Below are positions 9,802-63,430 of a DNA stretch of 64,000 bases, in pieces. The notes below the pieces were generated by a model. That model searched no databases. It was not told the origin of the DNA and saw only the letters and a list, made by a program, of their open reading frames with translations. The position numbers and the translations under genes are program-made. The stretch is from sequence record PV740454.1; one strand, given 5' to 3'. How positions within the stretch are numbered: position 1 is the first letter of the stretch; each line of letters begins with the position of its first letter.

Positions 9802-10314
9802 ATGACAGAACCAAAACTGTACAAAGGCGTAAAAGAAAAAGATCTACCTGTTTACACCTCGCGTGAATTTGGCTACAAATACATCTACAAAGATTATGAA
9901 GGTGGTTGGGTTCCTGAGTGGGCAAGAACTTACGTTCGCTATGAGAAATGGCTGACGATGCGCTTAGCAGTCGGATTTTACATTTCTAGCGAGGCAAACC
10001 GCATCATTCGTCTGATGCGTACTGGTGAGCGCCTAGCACGTCACAAAGGCAACTACGTGTTTCGTTACACGCCAGTTCCACACACTGGTGGTCGCAAACA
10101 ATGGGTTTCAGCTAATCGCGGAAAAGGCTTGATGTCTCAGATTCACCACGATCAAATGTGTGTTGATGAGATTGAAACAGAATACGGCAAAGTGGTACGT
10201 AAAAAGCGTGCTCTTACCGTTCGTCGTCTTCGCGATTGGGATGGGCTTACTCATTACGACGCGCCTCAGCGTAGTTGGAAACGCTCTAAAAAGCGTAAGC
10301 AGTGGATGAAATAA
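9802..10314 (+). CDS. Hypothetical basic protein
   Basis: GGAG RBS; Arg/Lys-rich C-terminus RSWKRSKKRKQW. Confidence 0.7.
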   Translation: MTEPKLYKGVKEKDLPVYTSREFGYKYIYKDYEGGWVPEWARTYVRYEKWLTMRLAVGFYISSEANRIIRLMRTGERLARHKGNYVFRYTPVPHTGGRKQWVSANRGKGLMSQIHHDQMCVDEIETEYGKVVRKKRALTVRRLRDWDGLTHYDAPQRSWKRSKKRKQWMK

Positions 10315-17250: not shown

Positions 17251-17272
17251 CAGCCCCGAAAGGGGCTTTTTT
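17251..17272 (+). terminator. Rho-independent terminator
   Basis: AGCCCC-GAAA-GGGGCT-T-tract. Confidence 0.85.
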
Positions 17273-17279
17273 AGGTTGA

Positions 17280-17353
17280 GCGGAAAATTCCGCATCATCT
17301 TAGTAGTATTAGTAGTTTTAGTGATATTAGAGATATTAGTAAAATTAGTTTAA
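17280..17353. repeat. Palindrome plus six 9-bp TTAG iterons (copy 1)
   Basis: GCGGAA-AA-TTCCGC, then TTAG at 17300, 17309, 17318, 17327, 17336, 17345. Confidence 0.85.
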
Positions 17354-17395
17354 CAAACGCCTTGACAATCGTATAATATACGTCGAGGTGATGAA

Positions 17396-17635
17396 ATGAT
17401 AACGATATACACAATTCCTAACTGCGACGGCTGTCGCCACGCTATTTCCCTCTGTAAGTTCAAAAACGTCCCGTACACTGTAATCGAGTTGCAGTCTCAA
17501 TCAGACATCGATAAATTGCATAAACGTCTTGGTGGTGTTCGCAATATACGAGTGCCATTAGCAATGCATGGAGATGACTACATTGGTCATTTACCAGAAT
17601 TGAAGAAATGGATCGATGCTAATCTGTATAAATAA
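17396..17635 (+). CDS. Glutaredoxin (NrdH/NrdC-like)
   Basis: ITIYTIPNCDGCRHA (CxxC); VP...YIG. Confidence 0.88.
   Translation: MITIYTIPNCDGCRHAISLCKFKNVPYTVIELQSQSDIDKLHKRLGGVRNIRVPLAMHGDDYIGHLPELKKWIDANLYK
17627..17634 (+). promoter_or_regulatory. T4-type late promoter for the capsid vertex gene
   Basis: Exact TATAAATA. Confidence 0.8.
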
Positions 17636-62731: not shown

Positions 62732-62746
62732 TCAGAAACGGATAAG

Positions 62747-62821
62747 GCGGAAAAATTCCGTCTCATCTTAGTAGTATTAGTAGTTTTAGTGAAGTTAGAG
62801 ATATTAGAAGTATTAGGAGAT
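62747..62821. repeat. Palindrome plus six 9-bp TTAG iterons (copy 2)
   Basis: GCGGAA-AAA-TTCCG, then TTAG at 62768, 62777, 62786, 62795, 62804, 62813; near-identical to 17280 copy. Confidence 0.85.
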
Positions 62822-62843: not shown

Positions 62844-62872
62844 TTGACAGTCTCCTTTTTTGATCATACTAT
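62844..62872 (+). promoter_or_regulatory. Sigma70-type early promoter
   Basis: TTGACA-N17-TACTAT, followed by ATCGAAAC. Confidence 0.75.
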
Positions 62873-62896: not shown

Positions 62897-63430
62897 GTGA
62901 AGATTATGAACTTGCGTGAACGTGAAGAAGAGCTAAAAGCACTATCAGTACATCCAGATGACGTTGAAATTGCTGTCACTGTATCGTGTGCTGGTATGAG
63001 CAATCACTACACTGTCTGTCCTTTCGAGTTCAAAGACTTTTTAGACGAACATGAAGGTACATCCTATATAGCATTTGAATGGCACAATTTCCCAAATGAT
63101 TTGCAAGACGAAGAACTAGACTTCGATGAGTTAGATGCATTGTTCAGCCTCGAAGATAGTCAGCGTGAAATCTGCGAACTGTTATATGATAATAGAGTTT
63201 GTATGTCTTATGAAGACGCTGCTGAGAAAGTCGAAGACTGTTGGGTGTTCGAAGGCACGAAAGAAGAATACGCAGAGCATGTAACATCAGAGCTAATGGG
63301 AATTCGAAGTGAAGATATCCCTGCAATCTTACGCAGCAACATCAATTGGGGTGATGTATTCATCGATTTAGATGCTGACGGTAGCATCTTTGAATTATCA
63401 CGAAACAGATACTTAACAGTGAATCAATAA
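62897..63430 (+). CDS. ArdA-like antirestriction protein
   Basis: Very acidic; WHNFP; EEYAEHV...IPAILRSNINWGDVFIDLDADG resembles the ArdA C-terminal domain. Confidence 0.65.
   Translation: MKIMNLREREEELKALSVHPDDVEIAVTVSCAGMSNHYTVCPFEFKDFLDEHEGTSYIAFEWHNFPNDLQDEELDFDELDALFSLEDSQREICELLYDNRVCMSYEDAAEKVEDCWVFEGTKEEYAEHVTSELMGIRSEDIPAILRSNINWGDVFIDLDADGSIFELSRNRYLTVNQ

Follow-up and report, generated by a model that had tools for sequence, protein, structure and literature searches.

The replication origins of phage T4 share no common motif and need no initiator, and the iterons of oriE have no proven role (PMC3016281). At oriF and oriG, the transcript from a promoter enters a downstream AT-rich unwinding element (PMC3016281). 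The intergenic PeSL/PmSL cassettes of nt-1 and KVP40 combine a terminator stem-loop and an AT-rich stretch with an early promoter, Shine-Dalgarno sequence and ATG, and have been connected with gene shuffling (Arbiol 2010; Comeau 2014). Islands of the PLE family, ~17 kb long, have their integrase at one end, their replication initiator at a constant position and, between divergent operons, a region free of ORFs (PMC9410903). We describe an element of the nt-1/KVP40 phage group that, judged from its sequence, appears to be a discrete, lineage-specific, cis-acting DNA module, which we have named the TTAG-9 module. Its sharing between phage and Vibrio islands is a new finding.

The stretch of DNA analyzed here (the window) covers the final 64 kb of the 247-kb genome of Vibrio phage CZ01, and it holds two copies of the module, both on the + strand. 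Copy 1 (locus C) lies directly 3' of the intrinsic terminator of an SprT-like gene, located by terminator scan and consisting of AGCCCCGAAAGGGGCT followed by a T-run (17252-17273, with the stem at 17252-17267). The copy opens with a GC-rich hairpin, the palindrome GCGGAA-AA-TTCCGC (17280-17293), which is joined by the invariant linker ATCATC (17294-17299) to an array of six head-to-tail 9-bp units of the form TTAGWRRWW (17300-17353). The TTAG starts are all 3' of the hairpin, at 17300, 17309, 17318, 17327, 17336 and 17345; a sequence-only reading of this DNA had described, behind the palindrome, six TTAG spaced exactly 9 bp apart, and its positions were confirmed. The last TTAG abuts the -35 element (GTTTAAC/TTAACA) of a sigma-70-type promoter, TTAACA-16-TATAAT (17350-17377), that is kept in KVP40, VH7D, F86 and 1.081.O and serves the downstream glutaredoxin gene nrdH (17396-17635, + strand).

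Copy 2 (locus D) begins 14 nt past the stop codon of CZ01_418, and the intervening DNA has no terminator. It consists of the hairpin AGGCGGAA-AAA-TTCCGTCT with one G.T/G.U pair (62745-62763), the linker TCATC (62763-62767) and an array of six 9-bp units (62768-62821) with TTAG starts from 62768 to 62813. A sigma-70-type promoter, TTGACA-17-TACTAT (62844-62872, + strand; also in KVP40), follows with its -35 hexamer 27 bp past the last TTAG and 22 bp past the end of the last unit, and leads to CZ01_419 (62906-63430, + strand), an ArdA-like (antirestriction) gene. The near-identical second copy noticed in the earlier reading is thus real, with ~92% identity over a ~60-bp core. The placement between a terminator and a promoter, also claimed there, applies to copy 1, which has both, and only in its promoter half to copy 2. 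Four TTAG at 9-bp spacing are expected 0.02 times per window and were observed at seven overlapping positions, all within the two copies, and Tandem Repeats Finder returned a period of 9 with 5.4-5.6 copies at both sites. The scarcity of C on the + strand holds for the arrays and is explained by the unit consensus TTAGWRRWW rather than by a general avoidance of C: regions with no more than one C per 54 nt number four on the + strand of the genome, three of them arrays, and three on the - strand, one of them an array.

Across the family, the module is a non-coding sequence of ~75-110 bp in which small hairpins are followed by five to seven TTAG units. It consists, in order, of a GC-GAA-GC mini-hairpin that may be missing, a GC-rich hairpin whose loop is A-rich, a fixed TCATC linker (family consensus (C/A/G)TCATC) and five to seven contiguous TTAGWRRWW units, with the GCGAAGC motif extending the module further 5' in most copies. 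The distance between hairpin and array is the same in every copy. TTAG is 99-100% invariant and positions 5-9 of the unit read W-R-R-W-W; the unit number is five, six or seven, and copies always differ by whole units. A profile of the module recovered exactly six copies in CZ01 (E <= 1e-18) and seven in phage 1.081.O, the next match being at E > 0.07, and degenerate, decayed or partial (3-4-unit) arrays are absent from the genome. The description of the element as twice-repeated, at two distant loci, was therefore an undercount; the whole CZ01 genome has six copies.

All KVP40-like phages carry the module, typically at six sites per genome, so the element is indeed conserved in related phages. 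Conservation reaches a relative whose nrdH locus is only ~70% identical, and the most distant relative has seven copies; at locus F, 1.081.O has a tandemly duplicated copy. Every copy is intergenic and, in each genome, co-oriented with transcription of their flanking genes (6/6 in CZ01, 7/7 in 1.081.O), with copies on both strands. Four of the six CZ01 copies lie in core regions. The genes downstream are an ArdA-like gene, nrdH, uvsY, gene 1, wac and a gene whose product is lipoprotein-like in KVP40, VH7D and 1.081.O. The gaps between CZ01 copies measure 25.8-54.0 kb, and a minimum gap at least this large has P = 0.007 under a uniform null and P = 0.004 with positions limited to non-coding gaps (P = 0.003-0.004 for the spread of gap sizes); 1.081.O has the same locus order and similar gaps, so the regular spacing reflects a single conserved gene order and counts as one observation.

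Beyond these phages, hairpin-anchored scans of IMG/VR found KVP40 and VH7D only, and a search of the same database for five TTAG at 9-bp spacing gave, among the matches listed, unrelated tandem repeats, mostly in giant-virus bins. Representative genomes of 185,579 bacterial species contained no true copy and six chance matches. Copies in bacteria were reached through metagenome contigs followed by protein look-ups, which led to ~14-kb chromosomal islands of V. alginolyticus, V. parahaemolyticus, V. cholerae, V. cyclitrophicus and Vibrio sp. Vb2235. The island compared in detail with the PLE family has its insertion site at the 3' terminus of an M32 peptidase gene, encodes a large serine recombinase and contains a 1.4-kb ORF-less region that separates divergent genes. 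In the islands the module lies in the ORF-less region and includes AGCGAAGCG and units 49/50 identical to those of KVP40. Where iterons were located (L164-L167, L169, L170), the module is ~500 bp from them; the iterons have a 22-bp period and, in the island compared with PLE, precede a 349-aa gene at the rep position, which has no RepA_N or other Pfam match. The module is retained in islands in which the iterons and the N-terminal part of the rep-position gene are swapped. Since the module stays while the iterons and the DNA-binding part of the initiator are exchanged, the module is distinct from the site of the island's own initiator. The islands also carry a phage-style promoter and encode either a homologue of the gp45 clamp (43% identity to that of the phage, E 5e-62) or a gp44-like clamp loader. 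Another island repeat, the 27-mer CTAGCTTACGCTATACAAGTC, is absent from both phage genomes.

The module resembles T4 origins in forming several dispersed, promoter-linked sites with an AT-rich, easily melted tract, in having one copy at the uvsY promoter, which is the position of oriF, and in its evenly spaced direct repeats, clustered as they are at oriE. It is unlike them in that all of its sites are one near-identical module, and its units are 9 bp long and contiguous, unlike the 12-nt iterons of oriE. The arrays fall within the least stable 0.002-0.8% of all 54-bp genome windows, copy 1 being the second least stable of these genome-wide. An R-loop arrangement, in which a promoter transcript runs into a downstream unwinding element, is not found at the module: oriF and oriG have a MotA-dependent promoter and a transcribed unwinding element, whereas at loci B-F the array is upstream of a sigma-70-type promoter. 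The downstream position of the T4 unwinding element thus speaks against reading the module as an origin of the oriF/oriG kind. GC skew follows gene strand only; the module copies lie away from its turning points, another observation that does not favor an origin.

Iteron origins of plasmids, lambda and PLE likewise have head-to-tail repeats beside low-stability DNA and inverted repeats, and the module, with its five to seven contiguous 9-bp units, has the same combination of direct repeats and an adjoining, easily melted region. It differs in unit length and packing, 9 bp and contiguous as against 17-22 bp, and in that no recognizable initiator gene accompanies the phage copies, which is a further point against an origin. 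The ORFs flanking the phage copies show no DNA-binding or initiator signature, CZ01_419 resembling ArdA, and for want of such a signature the flanking ORFs were ruled out as autoregulated binders of the array. A DnaA-trio was rejected because no DnaA box (<=1 mismatch) occurs within -150 to +200 of any of the 13 copies in CZ01 and 1.081.O.

The evidence favors, and partly supports, reading the module as a shared, cis-acting, protein-loading DNA site. In its fuller form, to which we tentatively give somewhat less than an even chance, the module would be a promoter-independent DNA site through which either a protein specific to infection or the replication/recombination machinery gains access. 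A protein synthesized or introduced in the course of infection may nucleate at the hairpin and linker and then coat the easily melted array, independently of the neighboring promoter. The T4-type replication/recombination machinery could enter there, by unwinding and then loading of helicase and clamp, making the module an origin-like or recombination-hotspot site, and the adjacent, outward-reading promoter may place negative supercoiling on the array (twin-domain model). PLE-like islands could use their own copy to attract the same factor, or could recombine with the six copies of the phage. The anatomy, copy number, conservation, spacing, instability and island sharing are observed; that a protein binds the sites, that they unwind, and that they take part in replication or recombination is what we infer from them. 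An origin-like role would fit the dispersed, even copies, the low duplex stability, the copy at uvsY and the island copy beside iterons. The island copy could serve as recombination homology only, and would in that case be silent on the module's role in the phage.

The best-surviving alternative is a promoter-linked operator or upstream activating array, in which a small phage or host protein binds the 9-bp units cooperatively and switches the adjacent early/middle promoter on or off, or insulates it from upstream transcription. At five of the six CZ01 copies, a sigma-70-type promoter follows the array within 0-27 bp, with a -35 of GTTTA(A/C/G/T) or TTGACA, N17 and a -10 of TATAAT, TATACT, TATTAT or TACTAT, and at nrdH and uvsY the last unit abuts the -35, a junction kept genus-wide. 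Every copy is co-oriented with its downstream gene, and at four loci (B, C, E and F) the array sits between an intrinsic terminator and the promoter, so that the gap is not normally transcribed. Ribbon-helix-helix repressors bind tandem 7-8-bp sites cooperatively (pSM19035 omega, MetJ), and the module is like the omega heptads and metboxes in its contiguous, head-to-tail short repeats near promoters and its whole-unit length variation; it is unlike them in its 9-bp period, its attached hairpin and its variable promoter position. That variability counts against an operator. Promoter distance and helical phase are not fixed, the last TTAG lying 0, 2, 13, 19 or 27 bp from the -35; locus A has no promoter past the array, its ATG following directly; locus B of 1.081.O has a late promoter only; and in the islands no sigma-70 promoter with proper spacing comes after the module. 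The first three of these features also indicate promoter independence. By eye, the array contains no internal sigma-70 or late promoter of its own (TATTAG is missing the final T, and TATTAGTA is not TATAAATA). Partial 3-4-unit arrays, such as graded regulon sites might show, are absent, the even genome-wide spacing is unexpected for a gene-specific regulator, and the downstream genes have no common theme. An operator is possible and, in our view, unlikely.

The same junctions invite comparison with PeSL. Those that host loci B, C, E and F have the terminator stem-loop, sigma-70-like promoter, Shine-Dalgarno sequence and start of a PeSL, and the nt-1 genome paper appears to have read a copy at ~53 kb as a degraded PeSL (Comeau 2014). 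The module departs from PeSL in that locus A is promoterless and locus D in CZ01 terminatorless. The nt-1 PeSL stem-loops, with the consensus A3-4 G3-loop-C3 T3-4, form a numerous family, whereas TTAG-9 has six loci only; and PeSL is enriched in hyperplastic regions, whereas four of the six TTAG-9 copies are in core regions. What PeSL conserves is its stem-loop and promoter; the conserved core of TTAG-9 is formed by the second hairpin, TCATC and the TTAG array, which have no place in the PeSL definition. TTAG-9 is an extra, sharply defined insert between the PeSL terminator and promoter, and it also occurs without a promoter, at locus A and in the islands.

The module could instead act as RNA, its hairpin and unstructured (UUAG-N5)n tract being transcribed by read-through or within an operon and bound by a repeat-reading protein; it would then work as an operator in a leader or between cistrons, as a site of processing or to enhance translation. 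Precedents are known: the operator of T4 gene 32 combines a structured nucleation site with an unstructured, repeat-rich tract, the TRAP site is 11 x (G/U)AG and the HutP site consists of UAG-N4 repeats. Like these, the module has a structured 5' element followed by a UAG tract at fixed spacing, and at locus A the array reaches the start codon and provides the Shine-Dalgarno sequence, AGGAG/AGGGA, in CZ01, KVP40, VH7D and 1.081.O. The orientation of every copy matches transcription, and a transcription- or RNA-level role is the simpler account of this strict co-orientation. In CZ01, loci A and D have a stop codon 5' and no terminator, and among the hairpin variants are changes that G.U pairing tolerates and a single G-C to C-G flip. 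Against these points, the period is 9 nt, unlike that of the repeat RNA operators, and only locus A places the module in a 5' leader; four to five of the six loci lie past a terminator and before the next promoter, outside the main transcripts. Hairpin pairing is retained in 77% of cells, with 16 variants, and its covariation, judged on very little variation, is weak and not significant (two double changes, both in one phage, a score equaled by 47 of 500 shuffles). The arms cannot pair in one metagenomic copy, the predicted folds of the array vary among copies with inconsistent z-scores (-0.7 to -3.9), and Rfam has no match at the module, phage or island. We consider an RNA element improbable.

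A repeat with no function of its own is also improbable, and clearly so. It would be a slippage-prone remnant of a decayed promoter or stem-loop, or a selfish module homogenized by phage recombination, and in the islands it would provide only homology for recombination-dependent replication or hitch-hiking. Signs of concerted evolution are present, the variable positions co-varying within a genome: of the KVP40 copies, 4/5 have TAGAA in the first unit, those of CZ01 have TAGTA there (6/6), and GGGTT occupies the second unit in four from CZ01. The tandem duplication at locus F of 1.081.O, the whole-unit changes in unit number and the breaks in CZ01-KVP40 synteny at loci A and D point the same way, although two breakpoints in five to six loci are not clearly above the background gene turnover between these phages. 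Set against this, throughout the genus the module keeps the same six loci, its TTAG core, its 9-bp phase and its hairpin junction while the flanks fall to ~70% identity, and decayed copies are absent. The phage genome is reportedly ~92% coding, which makes the retention of 100 bp of junk at six places unlikely.

A site for packaging or structural loading, at which six in-phase units wrap a ring-shaped protein such as the small terminase and mark preferred packaging starts, is highly improbable. Small-terminase sites are typically short regular repeats (SPP1, P1 pac), satellites characteristically copy the packaging signals of their helpers (cos in P4/P2, pac in SaPI/PICI), and on this reading a satellite would need one copy in order to be packaged; the regular array, the dispersed and oriented copies and the sharing of the module by phage and islands all suit such a role. 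To our knowledge, however, T4-type phages package by headful and use no unique pac site, and the copies lie on both strands. Helpers and satellites also share cis sites of other kinds, including the late-promoter activator sites of P2/P4, and the module is like these in being a short cis sequence common to a virulent phage and a host chromosomal island with homologues of phage genes. The pairing of KVP40-like phages with the islands as helper and satellite is putative, and the site matches no known activator, cos or pac.

A tiny hydrophobic ORF (L-V-V-L-V-V-L-V-I-L-E-I-L) has a negligible chance of being the conserved product: the TTA frame is open through every array and CDSs are annotated over three copies, two of them (CZ01_243 and CZ01_218) in that frame, but CZ01_277 is on the opposite strand, 8/13 copies in CZ01 and 1.081.O have no ATG, GTG or TTG before the array in the open frame, the start where present lies at a distance of 24-126 nt with no ribosome-binding site seen in the preceding 14 nt, stop positions vary, and none of the three positions of the TTA codon varies, a pattern of conservation at the level of nucleotides and not of codons. 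The three CZ01 genes annotated as hypothetical proteins over the module are probably not genes. The idea that the arrays are the rare 7-deazaguanine sites of nt-1 DNA was dropped because nt-1 DpdA2 modifies plasmids in E. coli that lack any array (PMC6884629, PMC10516641).

Returning to the module as a protein-loading site, its presence in the islands suggests, at the level of sequence, that a virulent group of T4-like phages is linked to PLE-like Vibrio islands whose partner phage was not previously identified. TTAG-9 may be a KVP40-type signal that recruits replication/recombination or clamp-loading machinery and that a widespread family of PLE-like islands has copied, along with gp45 or gp44 homologues and phage-style promoters, in order to sense and parasitize the phages; we regard this as a distinct possibility that is on balance doubtful. 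The sharing makes phage-island conflict or parasitism directly testable, and nt-1 or CZ01 on Vibrio natriegens are easily grown phage-host pairs. T4-type origins have been poorly defined for decades, and TTAG-9 offers a concrete sequence for mutation, pull-down and mapping. Should the recruitment and copying described here be true, the module would give a T4-type phage its first shared origin-like element defined by sequence, and the Schizotequatroviruses would be the helper or target of a satellite family that has had no known partner phage.

The window is identical (100%) to Vibrio phage CZ01 (PV740454.1, 247,138 bp) and 98.7% identical to phage nt-1; record positions are obtained by adding 183,138 to window positions, and the window and the record share their end. 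CZ01 is a KVP40-like, T4-type phage of the Straboviridae with Vibrio natriegens as its host, and its relatives are filed under Schizotequatrovirus. The two copies of the TTAG element were found as the sequence-only reading had described them. Copy 1 has the hairpin GCGGAAAATTCCGC (17280-17293), then ATCATC, then TTAG at 17300, 17309, 17318, 17327, 17336 and 17345, while the second copy, near 62.7 kb, has the hairpin AGGCGGAA-AAA-TTCCGTCT (62745-62763) and then six TTAG with starts at 62768-62813. Tandem Repeats Finder reported a period of 9 at both. Four TTAG at 9-bp spacing are expected 0.02 times per window, and the seven overlapping matches obtained all fall within the two copies. The reported near-absence of C on the array strand is also present and is accounted for by the unit consensus, TTAGWRRWW, with C only mildly under-represented among the minority bases. 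Placement between a terminator and a promoter holds for copy 1, which separates the terminator of a SprT-like gene from a promoter-like site for nrdH, but not for copy 2, which follows the stop codon of CZ01_418 without a terminator and has TTGACA-17-TACTAT downstream. Beyond copy 2 lies CZ01_419 (62906-63430, + strand), a "hypothetical protein" that resembles ArdA-type antirestriction proteins (feature score 0.91; an ArdA family is matched structurally at TM 0.71) and is followed by a DNA methyltransferase gene; a counterpart of CZ01_419 is also found downstream of the corresponding copy (locus D) in phage 1.081.O.

The element is not merely twice-repeated. The whole CZ01 genome was assembled from the record, and the genome-wide search that had been proposed for further copies was carried out with a profile built from 30 distinct copies; it returned exactly six matches (E <= 1e-18) and nothing more down to E = 10. 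These are, in record coordinates, locus A (52.8 kb, + strand, directly before CZ01_131), locus F (104.5 kb, - strand, between gene 3 and gene 1), locus B (130.3 kb, + strand, before wac), locus E (157.5 kb, - strand, between gene 35 and uvsY), locus C (200.4 kb, + strand; copy 1, before nrdH) and locus D (245.9 kb, + strand; copy 2). All six copies are oriented as the surrounding genes, and no partial array of three or more units occurs elsewhere in the genome. Three CDSs annotated over modules as "hypothetical protein", CZ01_243 (record 130296-130418), CZ01_218 (104424-104627) and CZ01_277 (157457-157666), are probably annotation artefacts; two use the open TTA frame and one lies on the opposite strand. 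The sequence-only reading, which proposed a replication origin or protein-loading site, had counted conservation in related phages among the points bearing on this, and BLAST places the module typically at six sites per KVP40-like genome. In the whole genome of 1.081.O, the most distant relative, seven copies occupy the six shared loci, locus F being in tandem duplicate (record 207126-207383, - strand); the two duplicates are 164 bp apart, which sets a minimum size for the duplicating unit. Elsewhere in 1.081.O (record 238315-238508), GenBank annotates "CRISPR spacer" ncRNAs within the gene for the tail-sheath stabiliser, which may be a coding tandem repeat under the wrong label. Scans of IMG/VR with hairpin-anchored patterns recovered KVP40-type genomes only, and a scan of one bacterial genome per species (185,579 species) gave only chance matches.

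Alignment of the copies defined a module with sharp edges, in which a AGCGAAGCG motif, a GC-rich hairpin, a TCATC linker and the array follow one another in this order. The AGCGAAGCG motif, able to form a GC-GAA-GC mini-hairpin, is located 13-22 nt 5' of the main hairpin in CZ01 loci A, B, E and F (reduced to GCGAAGC in E) and in 1.081.O loci B, D, E and F. All five of its genomic occurrences in 1.081.O lie within modules, against 0.6 expected per strand as estimated from CZ01 base composition. The hairpin has an A-rich loop and the consensus GAGGCGGAA-AAA-TTCCG(T/C)(C/A)TC, and the TCATC linker is invariant. Five to seven contiguous 9-bp units make up the array, with TTAG at positions 1-4 in 99-100% of units, T/A at position 5, purines at 6-7 and T/A at 8-9. 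Hairpin pairs are kept at 77% across 16 variants, among which phage F86 shows one G-C to C-G flip and one G-C to U.G change; this covariation is too slight to prove structure, and in one metagenomic copy the arms are unable to pair. The module matches no known RNA family, and a DnaA-trio element was rejected, there being no DnaA box nearby.

An intrinsic terminator immediately precedes loci B, C, E and F, and loci A and D in CZ01 come straight after a stop codon. Downstream of loci B-F is a sigma-70-type promoter with a -35 of GTTTA(A/C/G/T) or TTGACA, a 17-bp spacer and a -10 of TATAAT, TATACT, TATTAT or TACTAT. The last TTAG is 0, 2, 13, 19 or 27 bp from the -35, and the array-promoter junction at the nrdH and uvsY loci is kept genus-wide. 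At locus A, the array instead supplies the ribosome-binding site, with ATG immediately after it, in CZ01, KVP40, VH7D and 1.081.O alike, and at locus B of 1.081.O only a late promoter, TATAAATA, is found downstream. Given the variable distance, the promoter-less locus A and the late promoter alone at 1.081.O locus B, association with promoters is frequent, but neither obligatory nor phase-locked. Loci A and D are also synteny breakpoints between CZ01 and KVP40, at which the module and one flank are retained. The boundaries of gene replacement fall at these two modules: the gene 5' of locus D differs between CZ01 and KVP40 (KVP40 stretches L135 and L131), as does the gene 3' of locus A, where CZ01 differs from KVP40, VH7D and 1.081.O.

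The six CZ01 copies are separated by gaps of 25.8-54.0 kb. A minimum gap this large has P 0.007 for six random points (0.004 if limited to non-coding gaps), and a test of gap-size spread gave P 0.003-0.004. Order and spacing are kept in 1.081.O; since the phages share a conserved gene order, this does not count as independent replication. By duplex stability, the arrays are in the bottom 0.002-0.8% of 54-bp windows, and only one site in the genome is less stable than copy 1. Another very unstable tract, free of G, lies just upstream of CZ01 gene 32 (record 166261-166318) and may correspond to the translational operator of T4 gene 32. Cumulative GC skew in CZ01 follows gene strand and does not turn at any of the copies. 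The variable positions of the array co-vary within genomes: the first unit is TAGTA in 6/6 CZ01 copies and TAGAA in four of the five KVP40 copies retrieved, and GGGTT in unit 2 is common to four CZ01 copies. This pattern indicates concerted evolution, by which copies would either swap sequence or be held to a common standard.

A metagenome scan recovered true module copies on contigs with flanks dissimilar to CZ01 and 1.081.O, one of which (L152) encodes Thoeris and restriction-modification systems together with an M32 carboxypeptidase. The ORF adjoining the module has 83 homologues, all in Vibrio or Photobacterium chromosomes, including those of V. alginolyticus, V. parahaemolyticus, V. cholerae, V. 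fluvialis, V. vulnificus and V. cyclitrophicus; several of the Vibrio species concerned are infected by KVP40-like phages. Genomic contexts revealed an island of ~14 kb at the 3' end of the M32 peptidase gene in many Vibrio species, as in Vibrio sp. Vb2235 (CP150876.1; L164, 3314-17260), with related islands in L165-L170 and L152. A large serine recombinase is encoded at one end, and the island also has an HTH regulator and a small resolvase; an ORF-less region of 1.4 kb separates divergent genes, and the cargo slot is variable (Thoeris and restriction-modification in L152, a gp45 clamp homologue in L168, a gp44-like clamp loader in L164). In every island variant examined, the ORF-less region carries the TTAG module, 0.9-1.1 kb upstream of, and in the same orientation as, a gene of 338-349 aa at the replication-initiator position, whose protein has no Pfam match. 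The island module comprises AGCGAAGCG, CCGCATCATC and six units; a single difference separates the array's first 50 nt from KVP40 locus A, and in V. cyclitrophicus the 5' part resembles that of 1.081.O. Around it are short GAA-loop hairpins (L164 9000-9480; L152 3370-3745, - strand) of the forms GC-GAA-GC, GCACC-GAA-GGTGC or GTGCC-GAA-GGCAC, GCC-GAA-GGC and GGGC-GAA-GCCC. A 27-nt direct repeat, CTAGCTTACGCTATACAAGTCAAAGAC, flanks the module in L168 (3783-3809, 3971-3997 and 4093-4119) and similarly in L164 and L152, and is absent from both phage genomes, CZ01 and 1.081.O; the L164 module also lies between two direct repeats of ~150 bp.

Classic iterons of the ACAACTAC type, repeated four to six times every 21-22 bp, lie ~500 bp downstream of the module in L164-L167, L169 and L170. 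Another variant has GTACG-type 12-mer iterons and a different N-terminal part of the rep-position protein, yet retains the TTAG module, which argues that the module is not the site of the island's own initiator. The slot beside the rep-position gene codes either for a T4-type sliding-clamp (gp45) homologue (Pfam PF09116, E 4e-10; 43% identical to 1.081.O gp45 over the full length, E 5e-62) or for an AAA+ relative of the gp44 clamp loader (29% identity, E 2e-20). Just before the rep-position gene, a block perfectly conserved between two variants (L164 ~9835-9890; L152 counterpart at columns ~1246-1300 of alignment A3) reads GTTTAG-N17-TACAAT with TATAAATA within the spacer, and may be a dual promoter in which a phage-style early promoter overlaps a T4-type late promoter motif. 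The islands resemble, and are candidate members of, the PLE-like putative satellites of non-cholera vibrios, which are ~17 kb long and have a terminally placed integrase, divergent operons separated by an ORF-less region, and an initiator whose position is fixed (LeGault et al. 2022; PMC9410903). The family has the appearance of a PLE-like satellite or of a defence island directed at T4-type phages. The module might be retained in the island solely for its homology, over ~100 bp, to a sequence present six times in the phage, as in a T4-type infection homology alone could give the island recombination-dependent replication.

The fixed nucleating hairpin, strictly phased 9-bp sites and all-or-none copies, together with conservation across the genus and retention in an island otherwise mimicking phage signals, point to a cis-acting DNA site that would be read by something present during infection. 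We tentatively favor an origin-like or recombination entry site, the leading candidate at somewhat less than even chances. A role in DNA transactions is preferred to control of the next gene because promoter distance varies and some copies lack a promoter, because the copies are evenly spaced round the genome on extremely unstable duplex, because one copy is at the uvsY promoter, the position of T4 oriF, and because the island copy lies in an iteron region beside clamp or clamp-loader homologues. Under the twin-domain model, a promoter that points away from the array would load negative supercoils on it, so the usual placement would be sensible for an unwinding site. T4 origins are reviewed as having no common motif, with iterons without proven role at oriE and an unwinding element downstream of the promoter at oriF and oriG (PMC3016281), whereas the TTAG array is 5' of the promoter at loci B-F. 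None of the phage copies has an initiator linked to it.

A transcriptional or RNA role accounts for the strict co-orientation with transcription as well as a DNA role does, or better. A promoter operator is nonetheless unlikely, given the same variation in promoter distance, and an element acting at the RNA level is less probable still. Slightly below this we place a functionless repeat kept uniform by homogenization, which would accommodate the concerted evolution of the copies, and lower again a packaging site, which we consider improbable; a small share of the probability is given to none of the readings. A protein-coding gene is scarcely credible: the TTA frame is open, but 8/13 copies have no start codon in it, the starts that do occur are inconsistent, and the invariance of TTA is one of nucleotides.

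The nt-1 genome paper describes promoter/stem-loop cassettes (PeSLs) with a stem-loop consensus different from that of the module (PMC4122927); it very probably met locus A and read it as decay. The words "repeat", "intergenic" and "motif" are nowhere used in a 2025 study of Schizotequatrovirus genomics (PMC12028318). The literature searched, which did not cover the KVP40 genome paper, yielded no description of the module and no link between the islands and KVP40-like phages. The module is real, conserved and sharply defined, and would represent an iteron-like cis-acting array of unusual architecture and distribution, with a putative function. The link to the Vibrio islands raises its interest well above that of the two-copy repeat originally described.
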